From positions 124,001 through 188,000 of the IMG/VR virus record IMGVR_UViG_3300009703_004110: a DNA stretch of 64,000 bases; one strand, written 5' to 3'. Below are positions 28,854 through 57,281 of the stretch, one piece after another. The stretch's first letter is position 1, and each line of letters opens with the position of its first letter. Below the pieces are notes generated by a model. It saw only the letters and a list, made by a program, of their open reading frames with translations. It was not told the DNA's origin and did not search any database. Position numbers and translations under genes: made by a program.

Positions 28854-29312
28854 TTACTTTTTACGATGAGCGGCACACAAAGTGCCCTTTTTCGGAGCTT
28901 GACGTTTACATCGCTGACCATTAGTCTTTACAAATAAACATCTTTTAAACTCAGGAGGCGCCTTAACCTCTTCATAATCTTCCATTACAACCGGATTAAA
29001 CTTTGGTTCAGACTCTTCCTCCATCACTATAAATCCATGAGATTCGTCCTTTTTCTCTGTAATGTTTGTAACATCACCTGAGGTAGTAGTACCATAAATT
29101 GCGGCGCGCCTCTCCTGCTCGTTGGAGGCCTCTAACTCATCTAAATCTTTTTGAAACTCAAAGAAGCTTTCATACGCCACATCATATTCATCTGCATCAT
29201 CTGGAACATGGTGCTCTCCACGTCGTCCAATATCATGAGGAGATGGGGCTTTACGAATTGGCGTACCTTTAATTAGATGACTTCTTTTCTTCAGCTTGCT
29301 CTTTAGCATCAT
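28854..29312 (-). CDS. Hypothetical protein with C-terminal C3H Zn-finger
   Basis: RCLFVKTNGQRCKRQAPKKGTLCAAH. Start moved to 29312, which follows a GAGGAGG RBS. Confidence 0.6.
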   Translation of the reverse strand: MMLKSKLKKRSHLIKGTPIRKAPSPHDIGRRGEHHVPDDADEYDVAYESFFEFQKDLDELEASNEQERRAAIYGTTTSGDVTNITEKKDESHGFIVMEEESEPKFNPVVMEDYEEVKAPPEFKRCLFVKTNGQRCKRQAPKKGTLCAAHRKK

Positions 29313-29922
29313 CTTCCTCCTCAAAATACCTTGACAGAATCTCTTCTAAGGCGTCATGGATCTCATCCTCTAAATCCTCTGCCTCTTCTTTGTCTAGCTC
29401 TAGATCGAATGGCAGGTTTACCCTTGCGCCGACTTCATTATCCTTTATGAAGATATTAAAATGAGGGTCCGGAGTTTTGCACTCAGTATCTTCGTCATTA
29501 GTAGTGTGAAGAACTTCCTTCATCTGTTCGGCCATGTCATGAACCCTGTCAGATGCGTCGGGAAGCTCTAAAAGTTTAAGAGCAATCGCGAGTTTGGTAA
29601 GGTCACTAAAGAGAGAAGACTTCTTTTTCTTCTTCTTCTTCTTCTTTTTATCTTTCCACTTGACCTTCTTTTCCCACTTCTTAACTTTCTTTTTTGTTTC
29701 CTCTTTGTCAGTGGAAACGTGAGATTCTTCTAGATTTTTGTTTTGGTTCAATACGCCCCATGCCTTTGCATAAGCTCTCGCATCGCTTTCGCCAGCATCC
29801 TTAGCGCCCTCAAAGACAGCCATAAATTGGCGGTACTCTTTGGCGCCAGCACCTGGATGACGCTTCTTGACTTTCTTTTTAATATCAGCAGGAACTGATT
29901 TTTTCTTTGCCGTAATCAGCAT
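29269..29922 (-). CDS. ChaB-like protein with poly-Lys tract and acidic C-terminus
   Basis: VPADIKKKV...RQFMAVFEGAKDAGESDARAYAKAWGVL matches the ChaB pattern. A run of ten Lys follows. Confidence 0.6.
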   Translation of the reverse strand: MLITAKKKSVPADIKKKVKKRHPGAGAKEYRQFMAVFEGAKDAGESDARAYAKAWGVLNQNKNLEESHVSTDKEETKKKVKKWEKKVKWKDKKKKKKKKKKSSLFSDLTKLAIALKLLELPDASDRVHDMAEQMKEVLHTTNDEDTECKTPDPHFNIFIKDNEVGARVNLPFDLELDKEEAEDLEDEIHDALEEILSRYFEEEDDAKEQAEEKKSSN

Positions 29923-29935
29923 CTTAAAACTCCAT

Positions 29936-29970
29936 TAAAAAAGCCGCAGATCTAATGGGATCTGCAGCTT
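29936..29970 (-). terminator. Intrinsic terminator closing the accessory island
   Basis: RNA AAGCUGCAGAUC-loop-GAUCUGCGGCUU plus U-run. The G-U pair favours the minus orientation. Confidence 0.7.
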
Positions 29971-30201: not shown

Positions 30202-30570
30202 TTAGTTGGTTATATTCATCTTCGATATGCCTTTTGGATTCATAACGCCTATGCCAATTTTTTCAGTTACAGACCATGAAAGTCCCGTCCTTGGTAATAA
30301 AGCAGGAAAAGAATCAAAGTTATATACGCACCATTCCTTTAAAACATCTGGAAGATCATCAAATATCTCCTCCAGAGGGCATGGTGTTGATGTGGCAATA
30401 AGCTTTCCATTACGAATACTTTTCTGCTGTTTAATTTTATAACAATTAACTTTATAATCATATATTCCATAGTATACGAATTCAAATTCGCCATTAGAAA
30501 ATTTACCACTACTAACTTCTTTAAAGCCAGCAGCTTTCAATATTCTTTCAAATTCATTACAGTCTTCCAT
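30202..30570 (-). CDS. Array protein with shared motif (DLPDVLKEWCVYNFDSF) and C-terminal extension
   Basis: Variant of the shared motif; TAATG-coupled to the upstream gene. Confidence 0.65.
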   Translation of the reverse strand: MEDCNEFERILKAAGFKEVSSGKFSNGEFEFVYYGIYDYKVNCYKIKQQKSIRNGKLIATSTPCPLEEIFDDLPDVLKEWCVYNFDSFPALLPRTGLSWSVTEKIGIGVMNPKGISKMNITN

Positions 30571-30953
30571 TAGGCAAACCTCAATCTTTCGTATTCTGCT
30601 TTCTCTGTGGCATTAGCACGTTTTGCCTCAGCAGCATTAACAAGTCTTTTACGTTCTCTAGCAAGGTCCTGCATGTTAAATAATGTTGTATCTCTTATTT
30701 CATATACAGTTAATTGGTCATATGCGTGTTCGTTATAACTCTCAGGTAAGTGTCCGGCATATTTGCTATCCCAATACATTTCCTCATAATCGTCATCATT
30801 ATAGTCAAGATCGTTAACAAATAAAAGTTCTTTTTTAATTCTTGCAACAAGCTCCTCCATCGAATCAGCATATTCTGTCCAGGTTTTTACTCCGCAGCCA
30901 ATAGTGTAATCACATCCGCTGCCTTGCTCGGCTATAACTAAAAAGGTCTTCAT
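30570..30953 (-). CDS. Hypothetical protein in the array, no shared motif
   Basis: 127 aa; contains EQGSGCDYTIGCG. Confidence 0.65.
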   Translation of the reverse strand: MKTFLVIAEQGSGCDYTIGCGVKTWTEYADSMEELVARIKKELLFVNDLDYNDDDYEEMYWDSKYAGHLPESYNEHAYDQLTVYEIRDTTLFNMQDLARERKRLVNAAEAKRANATEKAEYERLRFA

Positions 30954-31240
30954 AATCTTATCTCTCCTTTACTTGTAGATACAAACATATCTAGATTACA
31001 TAATACAAATATCGCCTGATCTCTTCCAAGTTCCATTAGAAAATCATCAAGCTCAGTCTCTCCTATATCCTTAGGGTCAAGTCTACGTCGTTTATAAACC
31101 AATAGTTTATACCCATCGCTTACCATTTTTGGAACAAATCGCCACTTAAACTTATCTTTTCCAAGCTCTCGAAACAGCTCATCTTTAAAGCCTTGGCATT
31201 CAAATAAGGTCATTAAATGGCTCCATATCATTATGGTCAA
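30950..31240 (-). CDS. Array protein with shared motif (ELGRDQAIFVLCNLDMF)
   Basis: Motif near the C-terminus; start uncertain. Confidence 0.6.
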   Translation of the reverse strand: MTIMIWSHLMTLFECQGFKDELFRELGKDKFKWRFVPKMVSDGYKLLVYKRRRLDPKDIGETELDDFLMELGRDQAIFVLCNLDMFVSTSKGEIRL

Positions 31241-34866: not shown

Positions 34867-35880
34867 TTAGTCAGTGACAAAGCCACTGCCGACACCTCGG
34901 GGGTTTACAATCCCAATTCCGATTATTTCGCTGACTACCCAGCCAAGCTTCAACTGCTTAGGCTCGTCAGCAGGCAGTACCTCGATGTCCTGACGGACAG
35001 GCATTACACCTACGAACTCTGGATCCGCTACTGCGAAGACCTGCTTGTTAGTAACAACCTTGGAGACGATGATATCAGCACCGAAGATTGAACCATAAAG
35101 TCCAGTCTGTAGTAGTTCACGCTGAGTCACAGGATCGACCTGAGACGCACCACCGGCACCAGCAGACTCCCAATTAAGGATGTCAGTGAATTCATTGATG
35201 TGCATGAAGTACTTAGCAGTCACGAGGTCCCAACGATCGACCTGACGCTTTAGGTTTAGAAGACCGACCTTAGCCAGTTCATCAGTGGTAGTACCGTTGT
35301 CCAATGTCTGCAACTGGTTCTCACCACCTGCGTTGTTGTCACCGGCGAAATCAAGAGCGGCGAATACGTTAGCATCCTCCTGCGCCTGGATTTCCTGACG
35401 GGCCTTTTGCTGAGCACGATCGATTACATTGAATCTACGCCTCTTGACTTCAGCAATACGGACGGTTGGGTTTGAAACTACTTCAAACTCTGGGATGGTT
35501 ACTCTGTCACCGAAGACACGGGACTCAGGCGCGGTACCATTGCTAGATATAACAACAGCTCCTACGTCGATATCACGGTCGTAGACAGGTAGAGCACCTT
35601 GTGGAAGTGGATCGACTACGAGAGCCTTTCTACCTACACCTTGGTAATCAAGGTTCCTACGAATAGGATTAGCCATAGCTTGACCGAGGGCAGTCTTACC
35701 TTCTTGAGTCATAAGAGCCTGCTTGATCATTTCGTCTCTCTGCTCTTCATTTAATGAAGAACCCTGAGATAGAGCTGAGCTAGAAGGTGCCAATTCTTCA
35801 ATGATGGAAGCGTATCTAACAATCTGCGCTAGAGCATCTTTTACGTTGCCGGCGTTTAATTCGCCTTGTGTATTAAACAT
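34867..35880 (-). CDS. Major capsid protein (HK97 fold, compact encapsulin-like type)
   Basis: PIRRNLDYQGVGRKALVVDPLP, FEVVSNPTVRIAEV, AQEDANVF, GLYGSIFGADIIVS, IGIGIVNPRGV. Follows scaffold and decoration genes and ends at a strong terminator. Confidence 0.85.
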   Translation of the reverse strand: MFNTQGELNAGNVKDALAQIVRYASIIEELAPSSSALSQGSSLNEEQRDEMIKQALMTQEGKTALGQAMANPIRRNLDYQGVGRKALVVDPLPQGALPVYDRDIDVGAVVISSNGTAPESRVFGDRVTIPEFEVVSNPTVRIAEVKRRRFNVIDRAQQKARQEIQAQEDANVFAALDFAGDNNAGGENQLQTLDNGTTTDELAKVGLLNLKRQVDRWDLVTAKYFMHINEFTDILNWESAGAGGASQVDPVTQRELLQTGLYGSIFGADIIVSKVVTNKQVFAVADPEFVGVMPVRQDIEVLPADEPKQLKLGWVVSEIIGIGIVNPRGVGSGFVTD

Positions 35881-36589: not shown

Positions 36590-39193
36590 TTATTTGTCTA
36601 GTATATTGTTTATAGTTGTATCTATTAATTCAGAAACTTCAAAAAATCCAGCTTTATCAGCTTGATTTGCAATTTTGGTCAAAGCCATAATCACTTCGAG
36701 ATTTGCGTGCTTTCCTCTAAAGTTTCCTGTAGGAGCGCTCTTAGCCACACCTTCAGAATGTGATTTCTGCTCTAATGAATTTTCAACAAGCCCGCCATTT
36801 CCCATTGCGTCTGCGACAACAATAGCTTCAGGGTGAGCCTCCTGAACCAAGTCAGCACCTTTCTCTCCATGTAATTCATAAAGGTCGCGGTAATCTGCCT
36901 TGGATTTGTCCGCTTTCGTATTGTACTGACTCTTAAGTCCAGCAAAATACGATTTGGCATATTGGTCTGAAAGACCAACGATAGCGTCACTTATATACTT
37001 ATTTGGATATTCGTTTGCCATCTTCACTCCAATGGTCGATCTATTAGTAGATCTCTTAATTAAGTCTGTGTATATTACTAGATTTTCAGCTCGTCTTGAA
37101 CGACCTCTTCTTCTATAATACTTAACAGCATTTTTCCATCCACTATGACGCCTTCTTCCCTGTTTTGGTATAGCGTGTCTCATGAATTTTCTCAATTGAG
37201 AAGGAGTGTGAACGCCTTCTTTATAGAGATACCCAAGCGAATTTAGATAGTCTACTTCCGGCCTACCAGTCTTTCTAATAAATCCGCCCCACTGATTATC
37301 TGGATCTACGAAAGCTTTGCCGACAGGATGGTTGAGTAATCTCTTGACCATTCTGAACGCTGTGCTTCTAAACCCTGCCGGGGTATCTGTTATATCTATT
37401 GGGACACCATAGACATCTAGAATTGTCCTTTCACCTTCTACGCCTTCGCCGATTCTTGGAGATGCAACAGGTTTAGTTCCTTGCTGTACACCGCCTTCTG
37501 TGCCTGCTCCTGCACCGACTCCCTGACCGCCACTAATACTTTCTCCGCCACCCGCATTGATAAGTGCTCGGAATTGCTCTTTTGCAGAACCAAGAGCTGC
37601 TAACAGTTCCTGATCCGCCGCAAGAGTATCCTCCCAGTGATTTGCTGCTGACAAATGTTCAGCAATATCATCACTACTTCTCATAAAATTAGTCGTCTCA
37701 GTTTTAAGTTCGCTAAGCTGTACCATTGCTTCGTCTTTCTCTTCGTCAGTTGACTCCGAAAGATTGTAAAGTACAGAGGCAGAACGCTGATTATCTCCAA
37801 GCTCATCAACCATATGCTGGTTGTGAGTTTCACCAGGACTAGCTGCAACAAACCTTAAAGCCTTATGCTTAGCCGTGGAAGCAATGATAGCCTTATGAAG
37901 ACGATTAATAGCCTCTTGATATGCGGCTAATTTATCGGCATCTCCCGAGATATAAGCCCAAATATTATCCCAGTTAAAATATACAGCAAGAAGAATAGCT
38001 CCAACTGCCGCATATGTTATTCCCTTAATTGCAAGGCCCGCAACAGTGCCCTCACCCATAAGCTTTTGGAGCCATTGAAGATTGCCACGCCTTATTGCCT
38101 GTAGCCAGGTTTCTGGTAAGTCGGAAGCCTTAACCGCTTTTTTTCCGGCCTTTCTTCCGGAATCTGCGAACTGCTTACATAGTTTTTTAATTGCCTCTTG
38201 ATTACCGGCAGATGTCTTTGCCACAGCCTCAATCTGTCCAACAAGCTCTTGCTTAAGCTCTCCCAAGCCAAAACGCATAGAGCCGGCAATCTCTTCGGCT
38301 GCCGCTATATTTCTTTCGGCTATGGCTCTAACCTCATCTGTCATAGTAGAGAGTGTGCCTTTTACTTCTCGTACTGAACCTTCTAGTACAACAACAGCTT
38401 CTTCTAGAACACCTAATTGCTGACTAGATGTATTTAAATCATCCGCCAGTTTGGTAACTTCTGGAGTTACTGCTCCACCAGAATTAACAATTGCAGTGGT
38501 TAAATCTTCAACCGCTGGAGCTTCTGCCTTTAATGTTGCATCAGCAGGGTTCGGCTTCGTAGGCGAAACCTCTGGAGCTTCAGGCTTTGCAGCTGGAGCC
38601 TCAGGCTTTACCGGAGGAACCTCCGGAGCATCAGGTTTTACTGTCGGAGCATCTGGTACCTTTACTGGCGGCACATCTGTCCTAGCTGCCGCAGTAGTTA
38701 ATTCTGCTATACGTGAGTCTAGTCCGGTCGTCACCCCTGGGATGCCATTATTTATACGGATTGCAAGATACTTTTCAACAGCAACTGCCGCTTCTGGAGT
38801 TGACTCTGCAAAGTCGATAGACTCTCGCGCCTTTTCTAGTAGCTGCTTAAACTTGCCTAACTCTTCGGATGATCTTTGCAAATAAGCTATATCGTCCCAG
38901 CCATCTCCGGCCGCCTCTTTAGTAGCCTTTGCTAAAATTCGAAACTGTTCATCTAAAGACTTTAAGTTAACTTTAAATAGATCTTCAAACATGCTATGAA
39001 ATTCAGCTGTATTTTTAAGAGTAACCTTTGTAGCTACGGTTGCAAACCCAAGAGCATCATCAATATATTTGGCAAAGTCGCCAAACGCACCAACAGCCAT
39101 ATCAGCCTTGCTGCCCTTCTTTTCGATAAAAGAATGCATTACAGACGAATATATGTCGAATACTTCAGATAAAGATACTGGTTGAATTTTCAT
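36590..39193 (-). CDS. Putative internal head/ejection protein (867 aa) with Pro-rich repeats and a TM-like segment
   Basis: KP(D/E)AP repeats, coiled coil, hydrophobic GITYAAVGAILLAVYFNW, C-terminal LTKIANQADKAG motif. Confidence 0.5.
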   Translation of the reverse strand: MKIQPVSLSEVFDIYSSVMHSFIEKKGSKADMAVGAFGDFAKYIDDALGFATVATKVTLKNTAEFHSMFEDLFKVNLKSLDEQFRILAKATKEAAGDGWDDIAYLQRSSEELGKFKQLLEKARESIDFAESTPEAAVAVEKYLAIRINNGIPGVTTGLDSRIAELTTAAARTDVPPVKVPDAPTVKPDAPEVPPVKPEAPAAKPEAPEVSPTKPNPADATLKAEAPAVEDLTTAIVNSGGAVTPEVTKLADDLNTSSQQLGVLEEAVVVLEGSVREVKGTLSTMTDEVRAIAERNIAAAEEIAGSMRFGLGELKQELVGQIEAVAKTSAGNQEAIKKLCKQFADSGRKAGKKAVKASDLPETWLQAIRRGNLQWLQKLMGEGTVAGLAIKGITYAAVGAILLAVYFNWDNIWAYISGDADKLAAYQEAINRLHKAIIASTAKHKALRFVAASPGETHNQHMVDELGDNQRSASVLYNLSESTDEEKDEAMVQLSELKTETTNFMRSSDDIAEHLSAANHWEDTLAADQELLAALGSAKEQFRALINAGGGESISGGQGVGAGAGTEGGVQQGTKPVASPRIGEGVEGERTILDVYGVPIDITDTPAGFRSTAFRMVKRLLNHPVGKAFVDPDNQWGGFIRKTGRPEVDYLNSLGYLYKEGVHTPSQLRKFMRHAIPKQGRRRHSGWKNAVKYYRRRGRSRRAENLVIYTDLIKRSTNRSTIGVKMANEYPNKYISDAIVGLSDQYAKSYFAGLKSQYNTKADKSKADYRDLYELHGEKGADLVQEAHPEAIVVADAMGNGGLVENSLEQKSHSEGVAKSAPTGNFRGKHANLEVIMALTKIANQADKAGFFEVSELIDTTINNILDK

Positions 39194-39194
39194 T

Positions 39195-39572
39195 TTAATC
39201 TCCGGAGATTTCGGAAATGGTACGTTCTATACGATATGCGAGTTTAATATTTCCTAAATCAGCAGCCGCTTGTGCTGCAGCCTTTAGCTCATCTAATAGA
39301 GACTGCTGAGCAGACGCGTGCTCTTCTTCACTAATGCCATCTGCTTCACCATCGTCAGCAAGCTTCGCACTCTGCTCTACAACTGTTTCTATCGCCGCAG
39401 CTGCAGGTGTTCCTGCATCTTTAATATCAGTTAACTTCTGAACAGTCTGAGCAGTTTGCGCTTGAACCATGAGTTCCAACTTCTTTGCAGTTTCAAGAAT
39501 ATACTTTTCTAACTCTTGAGCCACAACGCTCTTTTTCCACGCTTGTCTAGTTGTAAGATCCCATTTTGCCAT
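39195..39572 (-). CDS. Hypothetical head-cluster protein
   Basis: 125 aa ending in LKAAAQAAADLGNIKLAYRIERTI. Confidence 0.6.
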   Translation of the reverse strand: MAKWDLTTRQAWKKSVVAQELEKYILETAKKLELMVQAQTAQTVQKLTDIKDAGTPAAAAIETVVEQSAKLADDGEADGISEEEHASAQQSLLDELKAAAQAAADLGNIKLAYRIERTISEISGD

Positions 39573-41387: not shown

Positions 41388-41993
41388 TTAAGCCTTTTTA
41401 ATTTTCTCTATAGTCACCAAAACCATATCAGAAGCGATCTGGTTACCTGATTCAGTTAACTCTTTAGCCATTTTTTGAAGTTCAGAAACAACATGGAGTC
41501 GATCAGACGCTTCTTTAACGAAGTCATCTTTGATACTCATAGCTGTAGTTTCTACAATATCAGAAGCAAAGCCGTGCCCTTTCACTCTTAAGCTGCCAGC
41601 AATCTTACCAAGACCGTTCAGAATATGACCGGCCGTGGCATCGAAATAGTCAGACTCAGATAACTGAGCATCTTCTGCCATAGAAGGATCGCAAGCGCAA
41701 GATTCTTGAGCACACTTCTTACAGACAGCTAAAGCCTCCATCGAGTCAATGCTGCCATCAAGTGCCCCACTAATATCGTCCATTGATACTTCTGTAGACA
41801 TAAGAAAAGATTCAGCACTAGGCTCCACATCAGTGGCTTCTGCTTCTAGATCAGGATTTAAAACAGCTTCTACAGGATCATCAATCGGAGACTCAAAAAG
41901 TTCTTGAGACTCCTTGATAATCTTTGCTCGCTCCTCAAGAATTCTTTGATATTCTTGAGCAATACTATCACCATTAAATCTATTACCAAGCAT
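41388..41993 (-). CDS. Acidic head-cluster protein with two helical-hairpin motifs
   Basis: LGKIAGSLRVKGHGFASDIV and LQKMAKELTESGNQIASDMV. Confidence 0.6.
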   Translation of the reverse strand: MLGNRFNGDSIAQEYQRILEERAKIIKESQELFESPIDDPVEAVLNPDLEAEATDVEPSAESFLMSTEVSMDDISGALDGSIDSMEALAVCKKCAQESCACDPSMAEDAQLSESDYFDATAGHILNGLGKIAGSLRVKGHGFASDIVETTAMSIKDDFVKEASDRLHVVSELQKMAKELTESGNQIASDMVLVTIEKIKKA

Positions 41994-42010: not shown

Positions 42011-45000
42011 TTAGTTGAATAAGTCAGAAAGACTTTCGACCATAGTTTTTCTAGGAGTATCCTCTGGGGTTTCGTAACCAACGTTTAGCCCACCAAGATC
42101 ACTGGCTACCTTAACGGTGTCAGGGACTCTGGCGTTTGCTACTGAGCGCTTGAATGCTTCAAATGCCTTTTCGTCAAACTCTAGAACTAAATCTACTTGA
42201 CTATCAAGAGCTGCTCTGGTAGGAGGTATTAGTTGCTTGCGCTGCATATCCATCGCAAGGTCATAAGCCCTTCTCATCCTTAGCTTAATCTGCTCTCTTT
42301 CGTCTTCAGCTTTCTTCTCCATGAACTTCTGGCCAAGGGCCGCTCTTGGGGAAGGAACCTGTTCGGTTACAAAGGCAGCGTCTTGGACGCCATCGTTAGG
42401 AACGACATCATTCGCGTCGTTTGCGTCTGACTCCTCTCCTTCGTCTCCTTCGTGATGCTTATCTTCATGCTCATCAACTTCTTCTTCAGCTGCTTCCTCT
42501 GCCTTCTCTTCTACGTCTGCTTCGTCTACTGCATTATTTACAGCACCGTCATCAGCCGCTTGACCGGTAGGCTCTTTCTGAGCTACAACTTCTGCATCAT
42601 CAGCAGCGTTTAGTAGTCCATCATCAGCGCACTGTCCGGTAGGAGTCTTCTCTGCCACTTCTCTCGGAGTACCAGTTGGAGCCTTATCGCCAGGAACTGC
42701 CTGTACTTGTCCACCAGTTGGCGCTGCTTTCGCTACACCCTCTGCTGCACCTGCACCGTCATCAGCTGCATTGTCATCAACTTCGCTATCATCATCGCCT
42801 TCGCTAGCCTCACCGTCATCAGCGGCCATTTCTGCAGCAGCAGGAGCGGCTTCTTGAGCAAGCTTCTTACGAGCCTCCTCTACCATAGCTGCCCTTCGAG
42901 CCTTTCTCATCTCTAGTGCCTTGGCATATAGTTCTGAATCAGTTGCTTCAGTTGCGGATGCGGTGCTCTGTTCAGGAACTTCCTCTACATACTCAGAAGT
43001 CTTAACTAAAGACTTAGCCATTACGCTGGCCATTCTTAGTAAGGTACGTGCCTCACCAGATAGCTGGGCTGAATCACTTAGAGCGTCAGCAGCGAGACCC
43101 TTTAGTTCTGCCATTTTCTTAGCAGGAATCTTCTTTCTGTGCTCGAATGCTTCAGAGATCAAGGCTAGTTCATCAGCAGATTCACTAGACTCGGCCATAA
43201 CGACCTTCATATCTCTTAGAAGTCTCTTAGATAGAGCTACTTGTTCTGCATCGCCTTCACCAGGAGTAACGTTGATTTCTACATCACCGCCACCACCAAG
43301 TTCGTCTACGGCAGTTCTAAGTGCAGATACGGCTTCTTCCATATCTACTAGCGCACTGTCTACTCTTGACTTCGGATCGCCTTCTTCTTCTGCGAGTGGC
43401 TCTTCATCAAGTGGAGCCTCTTCGCCCAACGGAGCTTCCTCACCAAGTGGGGCCTCTTCGCCGAGAGCCTCTGGAGCTGCTACATCGCCAAGATCGCCAA
43501 GCGGAGATTCTTGAGCTACGCGAGTTAGCTTAGCAGCAATTGCCGGCAAACCTTCTTCACGAATAGCTGCGACAACAGCCTTACCGTATTCACGGCTGCT
43601 TAGGAATTCCCAATTTTCTTCTAGCTTAGGACCATAGATGTCCTTAGCAGTTGTTGCCAAGACGAGGTGGCCATCAGCATATACTTCGAAGCAAGAAGCC
43701 GCTTTATTAACGGCACCGTTAAGGGCCCTAACCTGCTTGAACTTAGTGCTTAGCTTAGCTCTCTTTTGCTGTTCTTTTATCTGCATATCGCCAGGGAAAG
43801 TTCCAGTGTCTCCACCCATTGACTTATCCTGGTGCATGTGCTTATCGTCCATCCAGTACTTCTTGTAGTCTTCAGACTTAAAAGTAGATGGCTCAACAGG
43901 CTCAGCGGAACCTTCGCCTGCCGCACCACCGTAGAAGTAGGCTCTCCTCTCCATACGACGTTGTGCAAGCTCAGCTCTCTTTTGCTGCTCTTTTACCTGC
44001 ATATCTCCTGGGAAGGTACCAGAGTCTCCACCCATTGACTTGTCCTGATGCATGTGCTTGTCATCCATCCAGTATTTCTTGTAATCTTCTGAGGTAAAAG
44101 TACTTGGCTCGACAGGCTCAGCGGAACCTTCTCCTGATGCACCACCGTAGAAGTAAGCAATACGACGTCTCAATTCCGCACGCTTTCTTAGATTTGATTC
44201 ACTCATTATTTCTCCCATAATGTTTTTAATTGATTTGTCTCTATCTAGACTGGAAAAAGCATAAGATTCTGGTCCTACACCATCCGTATCGAACGTATCA
44301 GTAAGTTCACCACTGTCACTAGAAACTAATCCTGTGGACTCGCCTCCAGTTCCTCTAACACCTTCACTATCATATGTTTCAAGAGAAGGTGCTCCTTCAG
44401 CAGATTGACCGCTTGTAAATACCTCTCCTTCAGCTGTACTCATTTCATTCTCATACGCTTTACCAAAACTAGTATATAGCGTTTGAATATCTCTATCTGT
44501 TGCGCCGGCGTCCCTTAGCTGGGACAGAGCCTTTGCAAACTGAACCTCTTTAGCTGCTTCCGGACTAAGGGCTGCATCTTGAGCGTTCTTTATAAATCCC
44601 TTCTTTTCTAGATAGCCGCCAATTAATGACGCCCTCTTATCGATCGTGCAACCTTGCGGCCCACATGCGACCTTTAATAGCTGGTCCAACTCTTCAGCAT
44701 TCTTTAACGTTAGATTCGATACGAACTCGTTATAATCAGAAATGCCGTGGCTGACCAGTTCCGCCTTGTGATCGCCAATAGACGCCAAGCACTGAAGTAA
44801 TCTAGCCCCAGGTTCTGCAGGCTGAACTACGAGGCTATACTCAATTGGCTGTAAGCCAATGTTGATTTCGCCATATGCAGAACGTGCTGTTACACACTTG
44901 CAATACTGAGTTGGAGTGCTGGCTCTGTTTCCGCAGTCACTACAAATAGAAGTAGAAACCGCAGTTCCCATAGAACCATATCGAACAACCCCCGTCTCAA

Positions 45001-45508
45001 CCTTTCTAGCTAAGTTAGGGTAATTTACTTTATCTAATGCGCAAAGACCTACCGCCTGCTTGTGCTTCTCATCGTAATAAACGTCAAGAATAATACCCCT
45101 GATTCCGTCAACAGATTCAGATTTGTGGTCTACACAAAGTGGCATTCCAATCCAATCTCGGGCGGCCTTCTTTAGTTCTGATTCCGGGAAGATGTCGCCA
45201 TTGTTATTCTTGTGAGGTTGAACATTACCGTGCCACTTAAATTGGTCATCAAAATAACCCCAAGCACGGTCACTGCCAACCTTCCTCAAATTACCTTCGT
45301 CATCAACCAGGGAAGCTTCAGCTGCTCTTAAAAATATGATTGTAAAATATAAAAAATCGTCTGATTTAGGAGCCAGAACTTGTGAGGTTCTAGCAAACTT
45401 TCCAAGCCTTTTCAAAATAACAGGAGACGCGGTAACCGTATCAGCATCGACTTCTTGCACCACATTGCTATTGGAATATCCAAATTTTTTAATATCTAGT
45501 CCAGGCAT
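42011..45508 (-). CDS. Prohead protease-scaffold fusion (1165 aa)
   Basis: N-terminal NNNGDIFPESELKKA..WIGMPLCVDH...SMGT...CSDCG...IEYSLVVQPAEP is an HK97/herpes-type protease pattern. The C-terminus is acidic and coiled-coil. Confidence 0.8.
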   Translation of the reverse strand: MPGLDIKKFGYSNSNVVQEVDADTVTASPVILKRLGKFARTSQVLAPKSDDFLYFTIIFLRAAEASLVDDEGNLRKVGSDRAWGYFDDQFKWHGNVQPHKNNNGDIFPESELKKAARDWIGMPLCVDHKSESVDGIRGIILDVYYDEKHKQAVGLCALDKVNYPNLARKVETGVVRYGSMGTAVSTSICSDCGNRASTPTQYCKCVTARSAYGEINIGLQPIEYSLVVQPAEPGARLLQCLASIGDHKAELVSHGISDYNEFVSNLTLKNAEELDQLLKVACGPQGCTIDKRASLIGGYLEKKGFIKNAQDAALSPEAAKEVQFAKALSQLRDAGATDRDIQTLYTSFGKAYENEMSTAEGEVFTSGQSAEGAPSLETYDSEGVRGTGGESTGLVSSDSGELTDTFDTDGVGPESYAFSSLDRDKSIKNIMGEIMSESNLRKRAELRRRIAYFYGGASGEGSAEPVEPSTFTSEDYKKYWMDDKHMHQDKSMGGDSGTFPGDMQVKEQQKRAELAQRRMERRAYFYGGAAGEGSAEPVEPSTFKSEDYKKYWMDDKHMHQDKSMGGDTGTFPGDMQIKEQQKRAKLSTKFKQVRALNGAVNKAASCFEVYADGHLVLATTAKDIYGPKLEENWEFLSSREYGKAVVAAIREEGLPAIAAKLTRVAQESPLGDLGDVAAPEALGEEAPLGEEAPLGEEAPLDEEPLAEEEGDPKSRVDSALVDMEEAVSALRTAVDELGGGGDVEINVTPGEGDAEQVALSKRLLRDMKVVMAESSESADELALISEAFEHRKKIPAKKMAELKGLAADALSDSAQLSGEARTLLRMASVMAKSLVKTSEYVEEVPEQSTASATEATDSELYAKALEMRKARRAAMVEEARKKLAQEAAPAAAEMAADDGEASEGDDDSEVDDNAADDGAGAAEGVAKAAPTGGQVQAVPGDKAPTGTPREVAEKTPTGQCADDGLLNAADDAEVVAQKEPTGQAADDGAVNNAVDEADVEEKAEEAAEEEVDEHEDKHHEGDEGEESDANDANDVVPNDGVQDAAFVTEQVPSPRAALGQKFMEKKAEDEREQIKLRMRRAYDLAMDMQRKQLIPPTRAALDSQVDLVLEFDEKAFEAFKRSVANARVPDTVKVASDLGGLNVGYETPEDTPRKTMVESLSDLFN
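43757..44158 (-). repeat. Two near-identical 186-bp (62-aa) repeats within the scaffold, period 216 bp
   Basis: AYFYGGA.GEGSAEPVEPSTF.SEDYKKYWMDDKHMHQDKSMGGD.GTFPGDMQ.KEQQKRA at 43973-44158 and 43757-43942. Confidence 0.95.
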
Positions 45509-47396: not shown

Positions 47397-47684
47397 CTAT
47401 AGCATCCTTGCGAGTTCGTCTAGAACTTGCGTTATATATGCTGGATTTTTACCATTGAGCGTATTTTTAATCAAACTAATGCTAACACCAATAGACGCCC
47501 CACCGGGTGTTTTCTTGCTCGCCATATCCGGCACATTAAGTTCGTTAATCTTTTTCCTTAAATTAGGATAAGCTTTGACCCTAGACTCTAATGACATCTT
47601 ATAAAGCATGATATCAATAATACTCTTAATTTGCTTAGCCACATATTGCGGATTTTCATAAATGTATTGAGATTCTTTTTTCAT
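47397..47684 (-). CDS. Hypothetical head-cluster protein
   Basis: 95 aa starting MKKESQ. Confidence 0.6.
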   Translation of the reverse strand: MKKESQYIYENPQYVAKQIKSIIDIMLYKMSLESRVKAYPNLRKKINELNVPDMASKKTPGGASIGVSISLIKNTLNGKNPAYITQVLDELARML

Positions 47685-48217
47685 TCCGACTCCGACAAAT
47701 ATTGTTCAGCACGAGTTACAATCTTTTTATAGGCAGATTGCTTAGCCTTAGATAAATTAGCGTGCTTACTGTATTCAAGAAGTATAGTTCTGCTAAATAT
47801 CTTGGTCAATTTCTTTAAAATATCATTAGTATTAACTAAATTAGCATTTGTAATTTTAATCATTAGCTGATTAAAAAGAATCGTGGGATCCTCTTCTGTT
47901 GTTTCAGCATATTTTACAAGTAAATAATCGGTAAAGTCAGCAAGAGTCTGATTGTCTTGATCATCAGCTGCATCACCAAGTTCCACCATCAAATTAATTA
48001 TATCAGAAAAAGACCTTTTATCTTTTTCTTTCGGCTCTTTATAATGGTTCTCCTCGTAATTAGCAGGATCTTGCCCAAACCCTTCGACTCCCATCTCAAG
48101 CAAATTCCAGCCATTAGCACCTTCGGCCGCAACGTCATTTTCACGAAATGATATAGGTACATTCTTAACTGGCTTTGGTTCTTCTGGAATAGAAGATCTG
48201 TGAGATTCTTTTTTCAC
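47681..48217 (-). CDS. Hypothetical head-cluster protein
   Basis: 178 aa starting MKKESH; contains LMVELGDAADDQDNQTLADFTD. Confidence 0.6.
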   Translation of the reverse strand: MKKESHRSSIPEEPKPVKNVPISFRENDVAAEGANGWNLLEMGVEGFGQDPANYEENHYKEPKEKDKRSFSDIINLMVELGDAADDQDNQTLADFTDYLLVKYAETTEEDPTILFNQLMIKITNANLVNTNDILKKLTKIFSRTILLEYSKHANLSKAKQSAYKKIVTRAEQYLSESE

Positions 48218-48489: not shown

Positions 48490-50280
48490 CTATGCCGGAG
48501 GGGGAGCTTCTCCTCCGCCACCACCAGCTTCTGGTGATCCTCCAAGATCTAAGCTGCCTTCTGCTCCGCCATCTTCAGCCCCAGGCATTGGAGGCAGCCC
48601 TCCCATGTCAAGGCCTCCGCCACCTCCGACGCCAGGTAATCCGCCCATATCTTCGCCACCGGGCTCTTCCATCCCCGGAAGGTCGTCTCCATCTGGTGGC
48701 TCTGCAATAGCGCTATCTGCATCAAGATTCCTAAGCTCAGCTAGCCTCATACCGTTCATAGACTGCTCTTCCTTCTGTCGGATGACGTTAGCGATAAGCT
48801 CTTCTTTAAGACGCCTGTCTTCTTCTTCCTTACTTAGGCCCAAACTTCTATATAGAGTCTGCAGAGAGACCTTGTTGTCTGATACGAAGTTAGATATGTT
48901 CTGGATATAATCATTCATATCGTATAGGTTCATATGGTTGAAGTCTACTTGCGGAATTACGAGTCTTTTTTCGCCATCAACATATTCAAAAAATCCTTGT
49001 ATTTCGCATATTGGTGCGAAAATCTTTTGCTCAAGCCACTTCTTAATCATATTTCTAAAGATATCGTATCTCTGCCTTAGAACCTCTAAGCCAACAGATG
49101 AGCTGGCGTAAGTTACGCCCTCCTGATCCATCAGTGCCTTCGGTGTCATTAGTCCTGTATAGATATTATTATTGATTAATTCTATATCTGAAGCTATATC
49201 CAAAACCGATCCAGAGAATCCAACTCTCTCGATTGTAACACCTTCGTGAGTCACAATCTTGAAGTCTTTATCGTACTGAGCCTCTTCTAGAATTATTCTA
49301 AATGCGTCAATGTCCGCCTGAGTTGGCCTATAATCGTTAGAGCCTCCAAGCTTAACCAGAGTTAATGGATTAACCATTCCGTCTGCTTGCGCAAATTTAG
49401 ATTCACGAAGTTTGTCATATAGCATCAAATCTTTATAGATTGATACAATTACAGAGGTTCCTCTAATGTCATAAGGGGAGCTTAAAAGCTTAAGGTGAGA
49501 AACGTTAAGTGCATCTAATGGAATATTCTGACCTTTTTTAACAAAGTCCAAAATATACTTAGGCATCCTTCGCCTCATTTGCAAATCAGCAGGAGCATTA
49601 GAGTTAACTAATCTTTGCAGAGATGCATCGGGCCTAAGCGAAATAATAGTCTGATCGCCAATCGCCGGCTTCTTGACATGGGTATAGTCCGGATTAAGAA
49701 CTGTAATTCTTTTCCACATACCAGTCTTTCGATCTAATTCGGCATACGGGAAGGCCTCTCCCATCTTCCAGAACTCAAGCGATACGCCATACACTATGGA
49801 GTATAAGTCGATTCTCTCGGCCATCTCAAGAAAGAACTCTTGAACCTGCTTGCTTTTGCAGGTTATGTTTATTTTAGAGATAGGATAAGAGGCGTGCAAG
49901 TTGATAGCATTTCTAACAATAGGATGTGTATCATAAAAAATCCTATTCCATGCATTCATCGTGACTCGATCACGAGGTAAGTTTAGATTAGATAATTGAA
50001 ATAATGGAGAATAAACATCTGGCGCTAAACGATCTGTAGCACTCGTAGATGAAGGTAGAACAGTTCCACCAGAAGACGCACTCTTTCTAAATCCAGGACT
50101 ATGAGCTACTGCGGAATCAGCAAATTTGCTGAAGCTAGCAGGATCCATGTTCTCTTCTCTGCTCAAAGCAGTAGAAACTTCTGCCCTACGAAGCTTAGAA
50201 AGCTTATCAAGGGTGTTCTTATCTACTGAACCTCGATCAAGAACATTATTATTTGATGGTCTCTCGCCTCTTCTGGGCAT
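48490..50280 (-). CDS. Portal protein
   Basis: Follows TerL. Motifs FYDTHPIVRNAINLH, EFWKMGEAF, VSHLK...YDIRGTS, PLTLVKLG, KVSLQTLY; Gly/Pro/Glu-rich tail. Confidence 0.85.
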   Translation of the reverse strand: MPRRGERPSNNNVLDRGSVDKNTLDKLSKLRRAEVSTALSREENMDPASFSKFADSAVAHSPGFRKSASSGGTVLPSSTSATDRLAPDVYSPLFQLSNLNLPRDRVTMNAWNRIFYDTHPIVRNAINLHASYPISKINITCKSKQVQEFFLEMAERIDLYSIVYGVSLEFWKMGEAFPYAELDRKTGMWKRITVLNPDYTHVKKPAIGDQTIISLRPDASLQRLVNSNAPADLQMRRRMPKYILDFVKKGQNIPLDALNVSHLKLLSSPYDIRGTSVIVSIYKDLMLYDKLRESKFAQADGMVNPLTLVKLGGSNDYRPTQADIDAFRIILEEAQYDKDFKIVTHEGVTIERVGFSGSVLDIASDIELINNNIYTGLMTPKALMDQEGVTYASSSVGLEVLRQRYDIFRNMIKKWLEQKIFAPICEIQGFFEYVDGEKRLVIPQVDFNHMNLYDMNDYIQNISNFVSDNKVSLQTLYRSLGLSKEEEDRRLKEELIANVIRQKEEQSMNGMRLAELRNLDADSAIAEPPDGDDLPGMEEPGGEDMGGLPGVGGGGGLDMGGLPPMPGAEDGGAEGSLDLGGSPEAGGGGGEAPPPA

Positions 50281-53760: not shown

Positions 53761-53770
53761 TACGTTCTCC

Positions 53771-55041: not shown

Positions 55042-55789
55042 CCGCTAAATACTCCACTAATAATCTCTTCTGTATCAAAATATCTTTAAATTCGCCAACC
55101 AATGGAACATTCTTAAACAAATCCAGCTCTTTTAATAATCGAATAGTTTTATCGGCGTCTAGTTTAAGTGCCTTAGCTAACTTTACGGTTATATACTTAT
55201 CTTTAATATTTTCAGAAGAAAATAGCTCTGGATTATCTAGAGTGTATTTAATAATCTCATCTGATATCTCAAAATCATATCTTACAGCAAGGTTAATTGC
55301 TCTGTATATTCTTCTTGGATCGTCACCGATGGAAATTTTTGGCTTGACCGGTGTTCTTATCACCCCGCTCTTTATATCATCGAAAGCCATTCCGGTTGGA
55401 TCGTAGACCTCCTTAGTATCAAGATCTTGATGTAAAGTATTAATCGTAAAGTCTCTACTAAAGACCTCTGCCAAATGCTTCTTATCTTCGTCTAGTTCTT
55501 CCAGGACGCCTACCGACTCAAAGTTACTAGAGAAGTCAATATCAAAAGAGTCTGTATAGACAGTAACATGGCCATCATCTGATAGTTCAAAGGTTACGTT
55601 TAGTGTTGAGGCTAGTAAGATTCCAAGTCTAAGTACATCTGCCGAGTTAGTCGTAAGGTCTATATCGGAAGTCTTAATATCTTTTCCTAGATATACGTCT
55701 CTAGCTAGGCCGCCTACAATGTAGGGCCTATCTATCTTATTTCTCTCAGCTATTTGAGAGATAAGCCTTAAGACGCTATCGACTTCCAT
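55034..55789 (-). CDS. cca: Class II tRNA nucleotidyltransferase (CCA-adding/poly(A) polymerase family)
   Basis: YIVGGLARDVYLG..SDIDL, SRDFTINTL, DPTG, DDPRRIYRA. Confidence 0.8.
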   Translation of the reverse strand: MEVDSVLRLISQIAERNKIDRPYIVGGLARDVYLGKDIKTSDIDLTTNSADVLRLGILLASTLNVTFELSDDGHVTVYTDSFDIDFSSNFESVGVLEELDEDKKHLAEVFSRDFTINTLHQDLDTKEVYDPTGMAFDDIKSGVIRTPVKPKISIGDDPRRIYRAINLAVRYDFEISDEIIKYTLDNPELFSSENIKDKYITVKLAKALKLDADKTIRLLKELDLFKNVPLVGEFKDILIQKRLLVEYLADA

Positions 55790-55799
55790 GACTCAATCC

Positions 55800-57281
55800 T
55801 TACTCTATTGGCTGTGCTTCTTGTCCGCTCTGGCCGGGGCCAAACTCTTGGCTTAACGCCTCAGTACCTTTGCCACCGGCAACTTGTTCCTCTCCCTGGT
55901 TAAAGGTTTTGTTTACCTCTTTAATTGCTTTGTTGGAGATGTCAGTTGTCTTAGCTTCGGAAATCTCGGCCATACTTTTTCCTGAGGATAACATGCCAAG
56001 CATCTTGGTTACACGAACTAACGCATAAGAATACGCATCAATCAGCTTACTTTGAGCTTCAGCTAGTTCTGGGAATAAAGATGCTATGCCCAGTTTATCT
56101 AACATAATATCAAACTCAGCCAGCTGCCTAATGGTTCTTCTGTCTGCTAATCTAGCAGCTACCTCTTCTAGCTTAACAGCCGCTTCTCCAAGATTAATTT
56201 GTCCGCCAGTCTGTGCAAGCTCATCAAAGACGGCTCCATGATTTTCCACCGGAGGTTCTCCAGACGTTAAAACCCTCTCTATGGCCTCTCCTGGGCCTCC
56301 GGCTGCTGCCGGTTCCTGGCCTGGTACGGTATTTGGGGCGGCCTCTGCTGGCGCCTCAGGAGCCTCCAAACCGGTATCCGCACCGGGGACCTCAGGGGCT
56401 CCGAGATCCTGTGCTGCTTTCATTAGTAAATCAGATCCTGCGTCATAACCAAGCTTCTTAAACAGGCTCGCAGCCTGGAAAGTCAAATCTTCTCCGGTTG
56501 ATTGGAGGCGAACACGTCGAACTTGAAGATCGAAAGCATGAAGCATTTCTGCCAAGTCCTGCTGTTCTTCTGGCGACAAATGCTCATCAGTTCTTAATAG
56601 CTTATCTAGTCTACGAATTGCACCATTAAGCTTGCTTTTCCACTCTTCAAACATCTGGCCTTTGGCGTCCTTATCCTCAAGCTCTTTAAGCTTCTTACTA
56701 ATAGACTCGTCATGAGGGACGGAATCACCCGGATAAAAGTTGGAACTCAAACCAAATTGGTAATCTGACTCCTTTTTGATGTCCACTATCTGATCCTCCT
56801 CGGAATATTTCTGGTGCTGACCATCTTTATAATAAGTGATCCATTTTTTGAATCTAACATCTTCACCATTTCTAGTGTTTAATGTACCGGAATAATAATC
56901 TAATGCGTGATGAAATGTCATGTCACCAGATTCAACGGCACTGTATATTTTATGAACAAGAGATACCCACTTTTCCATATCAGCCTGAATCCACGGATTC
57001 TCTGATAATGCGCCCATGCCGATAGGGTACGCCTTCTTTGTAAGGTCTGCATTTTTAATTAATGAAGTGGTAATCAAATAGTAATAATCGTTTGCCGTCT
57101 TTAGACTTACTGAATCTCTATTTAAAAATGCATCCATCAAAATGGTTGGGTCTACATTCTCAAAGGTTGCTTCTAATATATTATGTATATTAACGAAATC
57201 TCTAGTCTCATCATGAGAAGCAAAGCGTAGACCGGGATATTTTTGTTCTATCCTACGAATGTCATTCTTTAAACTGCTCAT
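55800..57281 (-). CDS. Hypothetical head-cluster protein (493 aa)
   Basis: Multiple KTA/KNA/KKA/KES/KAA sites and a helical C-terminus. Confidence 0.6.
   Translation of the reverse strand: MSSLKNDIRRIEQKYPGLRFASHDETRDFVNIHNILEATFENVDPTILMDAFLNRDSVSLKTANDYYYLITTSLIKNADLTKKAYPIGMGALSENPWIQADMEKWVSLVHKIYSAVESGDMTFHHALDYYSGTLNTRNGEDVRFKKWITYYKDGQHQKYSEEDQIVDIKKESDYQFGLSSNFYPGDSVPHDESISKKLKELEDKDAKGQMFEEWKSKLNGAIRRLDKLLRTDEHLSPEEQQDLAEMLHAFDLQVRRVRLQSTGEDLTFQAASLFKKLGYDAGSDLLMKAAQDLGAPEVPGADTGLEAPEAPAEAAPNTVPGQEPAAAGGPGEAIERVLTSGEPPVENHGAVFDELAQTGGQINLGEAAVKLEEVAARLADRRTIRQLAEFDIMLDKLGIASLFPELAEAQSKLIDAYSYALVRVTKMLGMLSSGKSMAEISEAKTTDISNKAIKEVNKTFNQGEEQVAGGKGTEALSQEFGPGQSGQEAQPIE

Follow-up and report, generated by a model that had tools for sequence, protein, structure and literature searches.

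In bacteriophage T4, a short conserved N-terminal leader, the capsid targeting sequence (CTS), is the only shared part of the highly diverse internal proteins IPI, IPII and IPIII, and directs them into the scaffolding core of the prohead so that they travel with the DNA (PMC3012670). This leader is about 10 residues long, is not a hairpin and is cut off by the prohead protease. In bacteriophage P22, the scaffolding protein, which is encoded beside the coat gene, docks to the inside of the procapsid shell through a C-terminal helix-turn-helix, and this domain can carry fused foreign cargo inside (PMC9965877, PMC12005531, 10.1101/2022.12.13.520362, PMC9962691). The cargo-loading peptides of encapsulins, whose shell has the HK97 fold, and the encapsulation peptides of bacterial microcompartments are likewise short terminal peptides, shared by unrelated cargo, that dock it to the inside of a protein shell; they are shorter extended or single-helix segments. 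Finally, the phiKZ-like and SPN3US-like giant phages package many different internal proteins, among them propeptide-bearing inner-body and ejection proteins, that enter the host cell (PMC7411985, PMC5694885).

Here, we describe a helix-turn-helix module of roughly 30 residues that is attached to many otherwise unrelated proteins of an uncultivated marine jumbo phage and its relatives, including several head-assembly proteins, and that may mark proteins for loading into the capsid, although this destination has not been shown. As with the T4 leader, a conserved leader sits on diverse small proteins encoded in variable clusters: of 98 unique carriers in relatives, 72 have the tag at the N-terminus and 48 start exactly M-I-K-E-L, and the carriers are unrelated outside the tag. 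However, the tag is longer than the T4 leader, is a predicted hairpin and also occurs internally and at C-termini; sequence similarity to the T4 leader was not examined. The sequence following the tag diverges immediately, with no conserved protease site evident; the protease specificity is unknown, and neither cleavage nor packaging has been shown. The comparison with P22 rests on a 201-aa protein that carries the hairpin at its C-terminus and is encoded between the protease-scaffold gene and the major capsid protein (MCP) gene. No sequence homology was detected, since a motif profile search of all PDB chain sequences at E of 10 or less listed no P22 scaffolding chain, and P22 uses its domain on one protein while this clade has the hairpin on dozens. 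The tag resembles encapsulin peptides in being short, terminal and shared by diverse cargo, but those shells are not viruses, and this genome has the portal, large terminase, prohead protease and capsid of a tailed phage. We know of no shared hairpin tag in the phiKZ-like and SPN3US-like phages, to which this clade is unrelated, since its MCP matches that of phage G. The spacing of small and hydrophobic residues around a glycine turn is that of TPR, Sel1-like and designed helical-repeat hairpins, and designed repeats and TPR-like chains were the only matches in a PDB sequence search and a Foldseek search of the 201-aa model, none of them significant by fold. Nevertheless, the motif occurs in one or two copies per protein rather than in tandem arrays of three or more 34-36-residue hairpins, and no TPR or Sel1 hit reached the thresholds in five Pfam scans. 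Indeed, no Pfam-A or PHROGs v4 family covers the motif in any carrier, and a full-text search for motif strings found no relevant paper. This appears to be an undescribed portable docking module.

Statistical support for the motif

The window, by which we mean the whole 64,000-nucleotide stretch analysed (positions 124,001 to 188,000 of IMG/VR record IMGVR_UViG_3300009703_004110), belongs to a 332,270-bp genome with 402 ORFs; no alternative genetic code was used. The initial annotation, made from the sequence alone, had drawn attention to seven peptides sharing the pattern L-x-K-x-A-x2-L-x3-G-x3-A-(S/A)-D-x-(V/I) in six unrelated proteins, and this observation holds, with the motif being more widespread than was seen at first. 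All seven peptides exist and are encoded on the minus strand (Table 1), although the strict pattern matches only twice, both times in the 201-aa protein. We scored the 9 fixed positions over the whole proteome. There are 7 sites with at least 7 of 9 matches, four of them outside the window, whereas composition shuffles expect 0.06, the reversed proteome gives 0, and 1000 permutations of the residue-to-position assignment give a mean of 0.08 and a maximum of 2. By this count the 217-aa site scores 8/9 and the 867-aa site 6/9, while the 125-, 178- and 493-aa sites score 5 or fewer. In all, five more carriers lie outside the window.

Single-sequence HMMs built from few seeds overfitted and found only their seeds, and leave-one-out then failed to recover the 867-aa and 217-aa sites, so we moved to orthologue profiles from 80 related contigs, compared by hhalign. 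All alignments were gap-free and in one register, and column-shuffled controls had a mean of about 8 and a maximum of 16 or less. Copy 2 of the 201-aa protein scored 53.8 against copy 1, 40.3 against the 867-aa C-terminus and 25.8 against the 125-aa family, and the 867-aa and 125-aa profiles scored 29.0 against each other, so that these three proteins are strongly linked. An independent tag profile from metagenomic proteins scored 34.9 against the 867-aa family, 26.1 against copy 2, 21.8 against the 178-aa family (probability 66%, 28 columns in register; shuffles at most 14.2) and 16.6 against the 217-aa family, which scored 14.7-16.6 against three motif profiles in one register (shuffles at most 11.7); we regard these last two links as moderate. 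The 125-aa profile did not match the canonical tag directly (11.4, not significant), and the 493-aa protein, at 11.3-13.4 and thus at or just above the shuffles, is only a marginal member. In addition, the 867-aa orthologue profile found genome ORF g19188 (14.6 bits) and 201-aa copy 2 (11.8 bits), where the highest of ten shuffled proteomes was 10.6 and the next 5.3, and an HMM built only from metagenomic proteins found ORFs g5802 (24.4 bits) and g19188 (17.6 bits), where ten shuffled proteomes reached at most 7.8. By BLASTP, the carriers share nothing else.

Carriers in the window and their surroundings

Table 1. Motif-bearing proteins and neighbouring head genes, numbered from the first letter of the window
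Feature	Coordinates	Strand	Motif position
201-aa head-module protein, scaffold-like candidate hub	41388..41993	-	
Motif copy 1 of the 201-aa protein	41529..41618	-	residues 126-155
Motif copy 2 of the 201-aa protein, close to the C-terminus	41397..41486	-	residues 170-199
867-aa head-module protein, possibly an internal or ejection protein	36590..39193	-	
C-terminal hairpin motif of the 867-aa protein	36599..36688	-	residues 836-865
125-aa head-module protein, divergent C-terminal motif	39195..39572	-	39204-39293 (residues 94-123)
178-aa protein just downstream of the portal gene, internal variant motif without the glycine	47681..48217	-	47906-47995
217-aa lysine-rich and acidic protein, internal motif	29269..29922	-	29518-29607
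493-aa protein, conserved hairpin-like segment, marginal member	55800..57281	-	56400-56489
Major capsid protein (context, candidate docking partner)	34867..35880	-	
1165-aa prohead protease fused to a long acidic scaffold-like region (context, candidate docking partner)	42011..45508	-	
Portal protein (context)	48490..50280	-	

The 201-aa protein has a variable, acidic and disordered N-terminal half and a C-terminal domain, conserved in orthologues mainly over residues 119-200, that holds both motif copies, of which copy 1 is nearly invariant in orthologues. AlphaFold2 with a 25-sequence alignment predicts residues 119-200 at pLDDT 92-96 as helices 119-137, 141-182 and 185-200 separated by turns, and the protein belongs to no Pfam or PHROG family. 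The 867-aa protein has a coiled-coil region, a predicted membrane segment and a weak TMP_3 hit below the Pfam cut-off; its orthologues are conserved at residues 724-830, but the last ~30 residues are present in only some of them, and the motif is gained and lost as a C-terminal extension. In the 125-aa family the C-terminus is nearly invariant, and AlphaFold2 predicts helix 82-105, turn 106-108 and helix 109-123 at pLDDT about 84; both models put the turn at the glycine. Orthologues of the 178-aa protein occur in 5 of 5 relatives, and the 493-aa segment is conserved in 4 orthologues. In the single orthologue of the 217-aa protein the motif has the glycine and lies near the C-terminus; the initial reading of this protein as ChaB-like has no Pfam support, nor does our own by-eye peptidoglycan-binding reading of genome ORF g232394. 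Classical DNA-binding helix-turn-helix and helix-hairpin-helix readings of the motif were also considered and dropped because, by inspection, the spacing to the glycine and the net charge do not fit, and no Pfam model matched. An ESM Atlas look-up of an 85-aa carrier was uninformative, with scores of 0.83 or less.

The phage belongs to a clade whose capsid protein resembles that of phage G. The MCP matches phrog_2522, major head protein (E 2e-73), is 50% identical to Bacillus phage G gp27 and is 75-92% identical across the clade. The 1165-aa protein matches phrog_18299, head maturation protease, at residues 113-209, with its N-terminal part matching phage G gp19 and a C-terminal segment matching gp21, while the portal matches phrog_16240 (E 3.5e-48) and the phage G portal. 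Even so, the motif profile found no match in the whole phage G record, including its head locus, and a megablast of the head region against 50,697 phage records gave no match. Promoter and k-mer analysis upstream of head and tagged genes gave no informative signal, the genes being packed into long operons. Four carriers (201-, 867-, 125- and 178-aa) lie among the 11 ORFs between the portal and MCP genes, and this synteny is conserved; the hypergeometric P is about 8e-4 for 3 of 11, with the ascertainment caveat that the enrichment is partly a product of looking hardest there.

Distribution and portability

In relatives, the same module occurs as a nearly invariant N-terminal tag (M-I-K-E-L-I-K-L-A-N-H-L-D-S-K-G-L-x-K-E-A-D-Y-L-D-x-I-I-K-K). 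More than 100 unrelated metagenomic proteins begin with it at 75-93% identity, with E down to 1e-8 against 5.8 billion sequences. The first five relatives hold 4-16 motif matches each, and five further tag-rich contigs hold 7-23 tags each, on unrelated genes; one 20-kb stretch holds 10 tagged ORFs. Of the 98 unique carriers in the fetched loci, those not tagged at the N-terminus have the tag at the C-terminus (10) or internally, between domains (16). Among identical residues, 23-79% use different codons, and such synonymous changes show that selection acts on the protein. Outside the clade, tblastn of the canonical tag against the same 50,697 phage records gave no match, cultured phage records lacking the tag, and a search of 185,579 prokaryote species genomes for tag patterns confirmed none. 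Three of the five tag-rich fragments carry the clade's terminase, and those reaching the head region carry its MCP or a 201-aa orthologue. Annotated cargo consists mostly of cell-wall-acting domains, with LysM, Hydrolase_2, PG_binding_1, transglycosylase, GDSL esterase, ArdC-N, a 'virion structural protein' and a 'tail fiber' family represented.

Possible destinations of the tag

The initial annotation proposed a portable docking module that recruits diverse proteins to the scaffold or capsid interior, by analogy with the T4 leader and encapsulin peptides, and our analysis bears this out only in part: portability is strongly supported, whereas the evidence for the destination is circumstantial. 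Our preferred explanation, which we hold tentatively, is that the hairpin is specific to this clade of uncultivated marine jumbo phages of about 330 kb and binds one conserved phage-encoded partner, the most likely destination being the assembling procapsid, meaning the scaffold core or the inner face of the capsid shell. On this model, tagged proteins, including cell-wall hydrolases, peptidoglycan-binding proteins, esterases and one with an ArdC-N-like domain, would be packaged and later leave with the DNA, the 201-aa protein would be a bivalent scaffold or hub component, and the 867-, 125- and 178-aa proteins would carry diverged versions of the tag. What the analysis itself demonstrates is that the motif is real and exceeds chance, that it is portable across unrelated proteins, that models predict a hairpin, that selection acts at the protein level, that the motif is restricted to this virus clade in the collections searched and enriched in the head module, and that the annotated cargo is of the types listed; the binding partner, packaging into capsids and ejection are our inferences. 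There is no direct evidence that any carrier is in a virion or prohead, as the clade is uncultivated and has no virion proteome with which to make the comparison that had been suggested at the outset. Modelling the hairpin together with the MCP had also been put forward as a test, and a complex prediction of the MCP with residues 112-201 of the 201-aa protein returned a score of 0.00 and no verdict, which is not evidence either way and leaves coat binding undecided. The scaffold role of the 201-aa protein is inferred only from gene position and composition, and many 867-aa orthologues lack the tag, which is therefore dispensable there.

If the tag is a capsid or scaffold address, it would be a natural, sequence-defined loading system for tens of different proteins in very large phage heads, far broader than the T4 leader and built on the same structural idea as the P22 scaffold hairpin. 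It would let the injected proteome of an abundant, uncultivated marine phage group be read directly from sequence, point to new entry and anti-defence effectors among the unannotated cargo, and offer a compact tag for loading proteins into phage-derived particles. In its boldest form, which we consider possible but doubtful, any protein carrying this one universal hairpin, with more than 20 different ones in some genomes, would be docked to a bivalent scaffold hub or the capsid interior, packaged and delivered into the host with the DNA, giving the phage a modular, rapidly exchangeable arsenal of entry and counter-defence effectors. Even if the partner is not the capsid, a nearly invariant virus-specific docking peptide on about 5% of a phage's genes defines an unknown interaction hub, whose members a simple profile search now finds in the marine clade genomes examined.

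The main competitor, which we consider somewhat unlikely, is a docking or oligomerisation module whose partner is not the capsid: the hairpin might bring phage proteins to a conserved host or phage hub, such as a host-takeover complex, a membrane or cell-wall lysis machine or the phage chaperonin, or hairpins might pair with each other into four-helix bundles, with the copies in head proteins reflecting reuse of a convenient interaction module. Near-invariance of exposed residues across unrelated carriers implies a common partner but does not say which, and an isolated two-helix hairpin exposes hydrophobic surface and usually needs one. Most canonical tagged genes sit away from the structural module, in clusters of small ORFs with auxiliary genes such as DnaJ, AhpC, NifU and a phosphatase, and in this genome near GroEL and nucleotide-metabolism genes, which could equally suit early or host-takeover proteins. 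Against this, four carriers, including the only two-copy protein, lie in the conserved portal-to-MCP block, the lack of the tag in the prokaryote genomes searched means that nothing points to mimicry of a host module, and the annotated cargo is biased to functions expected at entry. The cell-wall enzymes could instead be lysis proteins rather than ejected ones, and the cargo, whose recognisable domains are mostly peptidoglycan-binding or peptidoglycan-degrading, plus esterases, might be addressed to an export or lysis route by docking to a holin-like or secretion component, as most tags are exactly N-terminal, where export signals sit. We think this improbable, since the tag is highly charged and amphipathic with no hydrophobic core segment, occurs at C-termini, between domains and in head-module proteins with no envelope function, and most cargo has no envelope-related annotation.

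It is similarly improbable that there is no shared function at all, with a generic TPR-like alpha-hairpin having spread by duplication and recombination of a convenient 5' gene segment and the diverged head-module matches being convergent. The structural matches described above, the marginal 493-aa match, the lack of a direct match between the 125-aa profile and the canonical tag and the appearance of adjacent tagged genes as tandem paralogues would suit this view, but conservation covers nearly every position, including solvent-exposed charged residues, in about 100 unrelated proteins, synonymous changes are abundant, and the profile alignments are far above their column-shuffled controls. 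Least likely of all is a chance or compositional artefact of alanine-, leucine- and lysine-rich helices, which might be suspected from the two strict matches, the low pattern scores of three of the seven peptides and the leave-one-out failures, and which remains possible only for the 493-aa site. For the core set, the shuffled, reversed and permuted controls, the independent profiles, the conservation in orthologues and the database E-values all exclude chance.

Genomic context

The window covers bases 124,001-188,000 of a single 332,270-bp contig of a jumbo tailed phage, on which almost all genes lie on the minus strand (364 of 402 ORFs in a simple gene call). The major head protein (MCP) is a 337-aa ORF assigned to phrog_2522 (E 2e-73) and is 50% identical to gp27 of Bacillus phage G, while the portal lies at 48490-50280 and the large terminase (GpA_ATPase) at 50293-52080. 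The 1165-aa ORF has a prohead protease domain and its far C-terminal part matches phage G gp21, so it is a protease fused to a scaffold-like region; at roughly residues 455-600 it contains two near-identical tandem copies of a stretch of about 70 residues, an internal duplication in the scaffold-like region. No close cultured relative exists. However, IMG/VR holds hundreds of relatives with an MCP 75-92% identical, including complete or near-complete contigs of 316-335 kb, and across them the gene order is conserved: protease-scaffold, 201-aa, 231-aa, 125-aa, 867-aa, 220-aa, MCP. In one related contig (L026) the MCP reading frame contains one stop codon, which may be a sequencing error or a defective copy.

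Within this otherwise conserved block, a GIY-YIG/NUMOD3 homing endonuclease gene (identified by Pfam) sits between the 231-aa and 125-aa head genes, which are adjacent in relatives (for example, about 240 bases apart in L006, a locus from one of them); it looks like a mobile insertion inside the head module. Just downstream of the MCP gene is a cysteine-rich 289-aa ORF that by eye looks like an HNH-type endonuclease, although Pfam gave no hit at E of 0.001 or less. A 605-aa head-module protein of unknown role, with an N-terminal DUF192 domain (E 1.9e-20), lies between the portal-proximal small genes and the protease-scaffold gene.

Coordinates of the features discussed in the window, elsewhere in the genome (G000:C1, the 332,270-bp contig; L003 is a locus taken from it) and in related contigs
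Sequence	Position	Strand	Feature
Window	30202-32834	-	Run of small ORFs (98-123 aa)
Window	33839-34708	-	Cysteine-rich 289-aa ORF
Window	34867-35880		Major head protein (MCP), 337 aa
Window	39798-40556	-	GIY-YIG/NUMOD3 homing endonuclease gene
Window	42011-45508	-	Protease-scaffold protein, 1165 aa
Window	45571-47388	-	605-aa protein with DUF192 domain
Window	48490-50280		Portal
Window	50293-52080		Large terminase
Window	55034-55789	-	251-aa ORF with nucleotidyltransferase head domain
G000:C1, outside the window	5802-6749		Motif carrier g5802_6749
G000:C1, outside the window	19188-19445		Motif carrier g19188_19445
G000:C1, outside the window	230488-231414 and 229647-230480 (L003 5489-6415 and 4648-5481)		Adenylosuccinate-synthetase-like gene next to a DHH phosphoesterase
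G000:C1, outside the window	232394-234256		Motif carrier g232394_234256, 620 aa
G000:C1, outside the window	234260-235039		Motif carrier g234260_235039, 259 aa
G000:C1, outside the window	237196-238797 (L003 12197-13798)		GroEL chaperonin
G000:C1	243390-244304		Weaker motif site, g243390_244304
L022 (related contig)	5-3148 and 3272-3709		867-aa gene split into two ORFs
L028 (related contig)	102-569 and 693-1130		867-aa gene split into two ORFs
L026 (related contig)	10001-11011		MCP reading frame with one stop codon

The motif exceeds chance

The initial annotation had proposed that seven peptides from unrelated proteins share a helical-hairpin motif, and this observation holds. All seven peptides are present, although the pattern as it was written matches strictly only twice, both times in the 201-aa protein. 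The nine fixed positions of the pattern were scored over the whole proteome. Seven sites have at least 7 of 9 matches, against 0.06 expected from composition shuffles; the reversed proteome gives 0, and a thousand permutations of which residue goes at which position give a mean of 0.08 and a maximum of 2. Four of the seven sites are in proteins outside the window (g5802_6749, g19188_19445, g232394_234256 and g234260_235039), and these are independent confirmations of the pattern, with a further, weaker site in g243390_244304. In leave-one-protein-out HMM tests, the four outside sites are recovered at 12-25 bits, with shuffled proteomes at about 8 or less, whereas the 201-aa site is marginal and the 867- and 217-aa sites are not recovered. 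Two of the outside carriers are adjacent: the 259-aa protein has an HExxH metalloprotease-like signature ahead of its internal motif, a layout that its homologues in relatives keep, and the 620-aa protein has an N-terminal tag and a weak endolysin-family hit (E 0.037).

Since single sequences were too weak, we turned to conservation in relatives. Both copies of the motif in the 201-aa family are nearly invariant while the rest of the protein drifts, and the C-terminus of the 125-aa family is likewise nearly invariant. In the 867-aa family the last ~30 residues carry the motif in some lineages, but in many others they are simply missing and the protein ends just before them; in two contigs (L022 and L028) the gene is split into two ORFs that both end in the hairpin motif, which looks like a duplication of the tag-encoding end. 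This is the behaviour of a module. When the 30-column family profiles were compared by hhalign, they aligned without gaps and in the same register, with column-shuffled controls averaging about 8 and never exceeding 16.

Profile-profile scores between the motif families of the head-module proteins
Pair	hhalign score
201-aa copy 1 vs copy 2	53.8
copy 2 vs 867-aa	40.3
copy 2 vs 125-aa	25.8
867-aa vs 125-aa	29.0

We then gave hhalign wider windows, so that the register was not imposed. The 178-aa family matches the canonical tag profile at 21.8 and the 217-aa family matches three profiles at 14.7-16.6, but the 493-aa family reaches only 11-13 and is therefore a marginal member. BLASTP among all carriers finds no similarity except the motif itself, and so the description of the carriers as unrelated proteins is correct.

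A larger family of tagged proteins

The motif in the window is the local face of a much larger family. Scanning the full records of five relatives with the motif profile gave 4-16 matches per record, many of them in small ORFs bearing a sharper version at the extreme N-terminus or near the C-terminus. A word search with one such 112-aa protein returned 103 proteins from Tara, JGI, ENA and NCBI metagenomes, which share only the first ~32 residues, at 75-93% identity, with E-values down to 1e-8 against 5.8 billion sequences. Almost every position of the tag is conserved above 85%, including charged exposed residues. An HMM built only from these foreign proteins picks out g5802 (24.4 bits) and g19188 (17.6 bits) in this genome, where ten shuffled proteomes reach at most 7.8, and its profile matches the 867-aa C-terminal family at 34.9 and 201-aa copy 2 at 26.1, which ties the head-module variants to the canonical tag.

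Further IMG/VR contigs of 109-232 kb carry 7-23 canonical tags each, often in tight clusters, and one 20-kb stretch of an ENA contig has ten N-terminally tagged ORFs. Three of the five IMG/VR fragments carry the clade's terminase at 66-68% identity; one carries its MCP and two carry a 201-aa orthologue, whereas the other two are fragments lacking the head region. In the fetched loci there are 98 unique carriers, of which 72 have the tag at the N-terminus (48 beginning exactly M-I-K-E-L), 10 at the C-terminus and 16 internally. The tag was not found in 50,697 GenBank phage records, in the whole phage G genome, in one genome each of 185,579 prokaryote species, in any Pfam or PHROG model, or in the literature searched by motif strings.

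Predicted structure and selection

AlphaFold2 with orthologue alignments models the C-terminal domain of the 201-aa protein at pLDDT 92-96, with helix 119-137, a turn at the glycine, a long helix 141-182, a turn at the second glycine, and helix 185-200; these are two predicted hairpins sharing one long central helix, while the N-terminal half is disordered. The 125-aa protein is predicted to end in helix 82-105, a turn at 106-108, and helix 109-123. PDB sequence and fold searches return only designed helical repeats and TPR-like proteins, and so the fold is a generic alpha-hairpin and what is unusual is the conserved surface. Between tags, 23-79% of identical residues are encoded by different codons, meaning that conservation is maintained on the protein, not on the DNA or a regulatory element.

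What the tag might do

The initial annotation read the motif as a portable docking module that recruits diverse proteins to the scaffold or capsid interior, and our results support this only in part. The tag is portable, it tolerates any position in the protein, it is nearly invariant (exposed side chains included) and it is restricted to one virus clade in the collections searched; these four facts point to a docking module with one common partner, but that partner and its identity are inferred, and no function has been demonstrated. We think it likely that this is a portable docking tag with a common phage-specific partner, but we favour the procapsid as that partner only tentatively, the main rival being a non-capsid hub or association of hairpins with one another.

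The case that the partner is the assembling head is circumstantial. Four carriers, with five motif copies, lie among the 11 ORFs between the portal and MCP genes, and counting only the three that the family HMM detects, the hypergeometric P is about 8e-4, although we searched this region hardest, which inflates that figure. The only two-copy protein, the 201-aa protein, has the position and composition of a scaffolding protein: it sits next to the protease-scaffold gene, has a disordered acidic N-terminus and ends in a predicted helix-turn-helix, matching the P22 scaffolding protein, whose terminal helix-turn-helix binds coat (PMC9965877, PMC12005531). A complex prediction with the MCP had been suggested at the outset as a way of examining the capsid reading, and the one that was made, of the MCP with 201-aa residues 112-201, returned no verdict and leaves the matter where it stood; predictions of the tag with MCP hexamers and pentamers, the 201-aa hairpins, the scaffold region and the portal were not made, and neither co-variation with candidate partners, the timing of expression relative to head genes, nor a clade-wide census of tags without the 201-aa gene was examined. 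Comparison with a virion proteome had likewise been proposed, but no proteome exists for the clade. Among 73 tagged ORFs of at least 140 aa, the few recognisable domains are LysM, PG_binding_1, Hydrolase_2, transglycosylase and endolysin-type families, GDSL esterases and an ArdC-N anti-restriction domain, together with one 'virion structural protein' and one 'tail fiber' family. These are functions expected of proteins that act at entry, but cell-wall enzymes could serve lysis rather than entry. It also weighs against the capsid reading that many 867-aa orthologues do without the tag, and that the canonical tag clusters lie away from structural genes, in this genome next to GroEL, methyltransferase and nucleotide-metabolism genes; the phage-encoded GroEL chaperonin (phrog_5725, E 2.5e-141) lies a few genes from two motif carriers.

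The closest functional precedent is the T4 capsid targeting sequence (CTS), which is the only conserved element of a highly diverse set of internal proteins (PMC3012670). In our reading the motif would work like the T4 CTS, the P22 scaffold hairpin and the encapsulin loading peptides, but it is not a member of any of them: the tag is three times longer than the T4 leader and is predicted to be folded, no sequence relationship to P22 was detected, and the shell here belongs to a tailed phage, not an encapsulin. Cargo or address tags for protein shells are already known, but no curated family, and no paper in the literature searched, describes this one.

Other genes in the window and genome

Three ORFs in the run of small ORFs (98-123 aa) at 30202-32834 of the window share a similar C-terminal ending and look like a small paralogous family of unknown function; Pfam gave no hit for the one that was tested. 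A 251-aa ORF with a poly(A) polymerase or CCA-adding nucleotidyltransferase head domain (PF01743, E 1.4e-12) lies next to the 493-aa protein. Outside the window, the pairing of an adenylosuccinate-synthetase-like gene (phrog_1211, E 5e-55) with a DHH phosphoesterase is reminiscent of the genes for 2-aminoadenine (Z-base) DNA in some phages.
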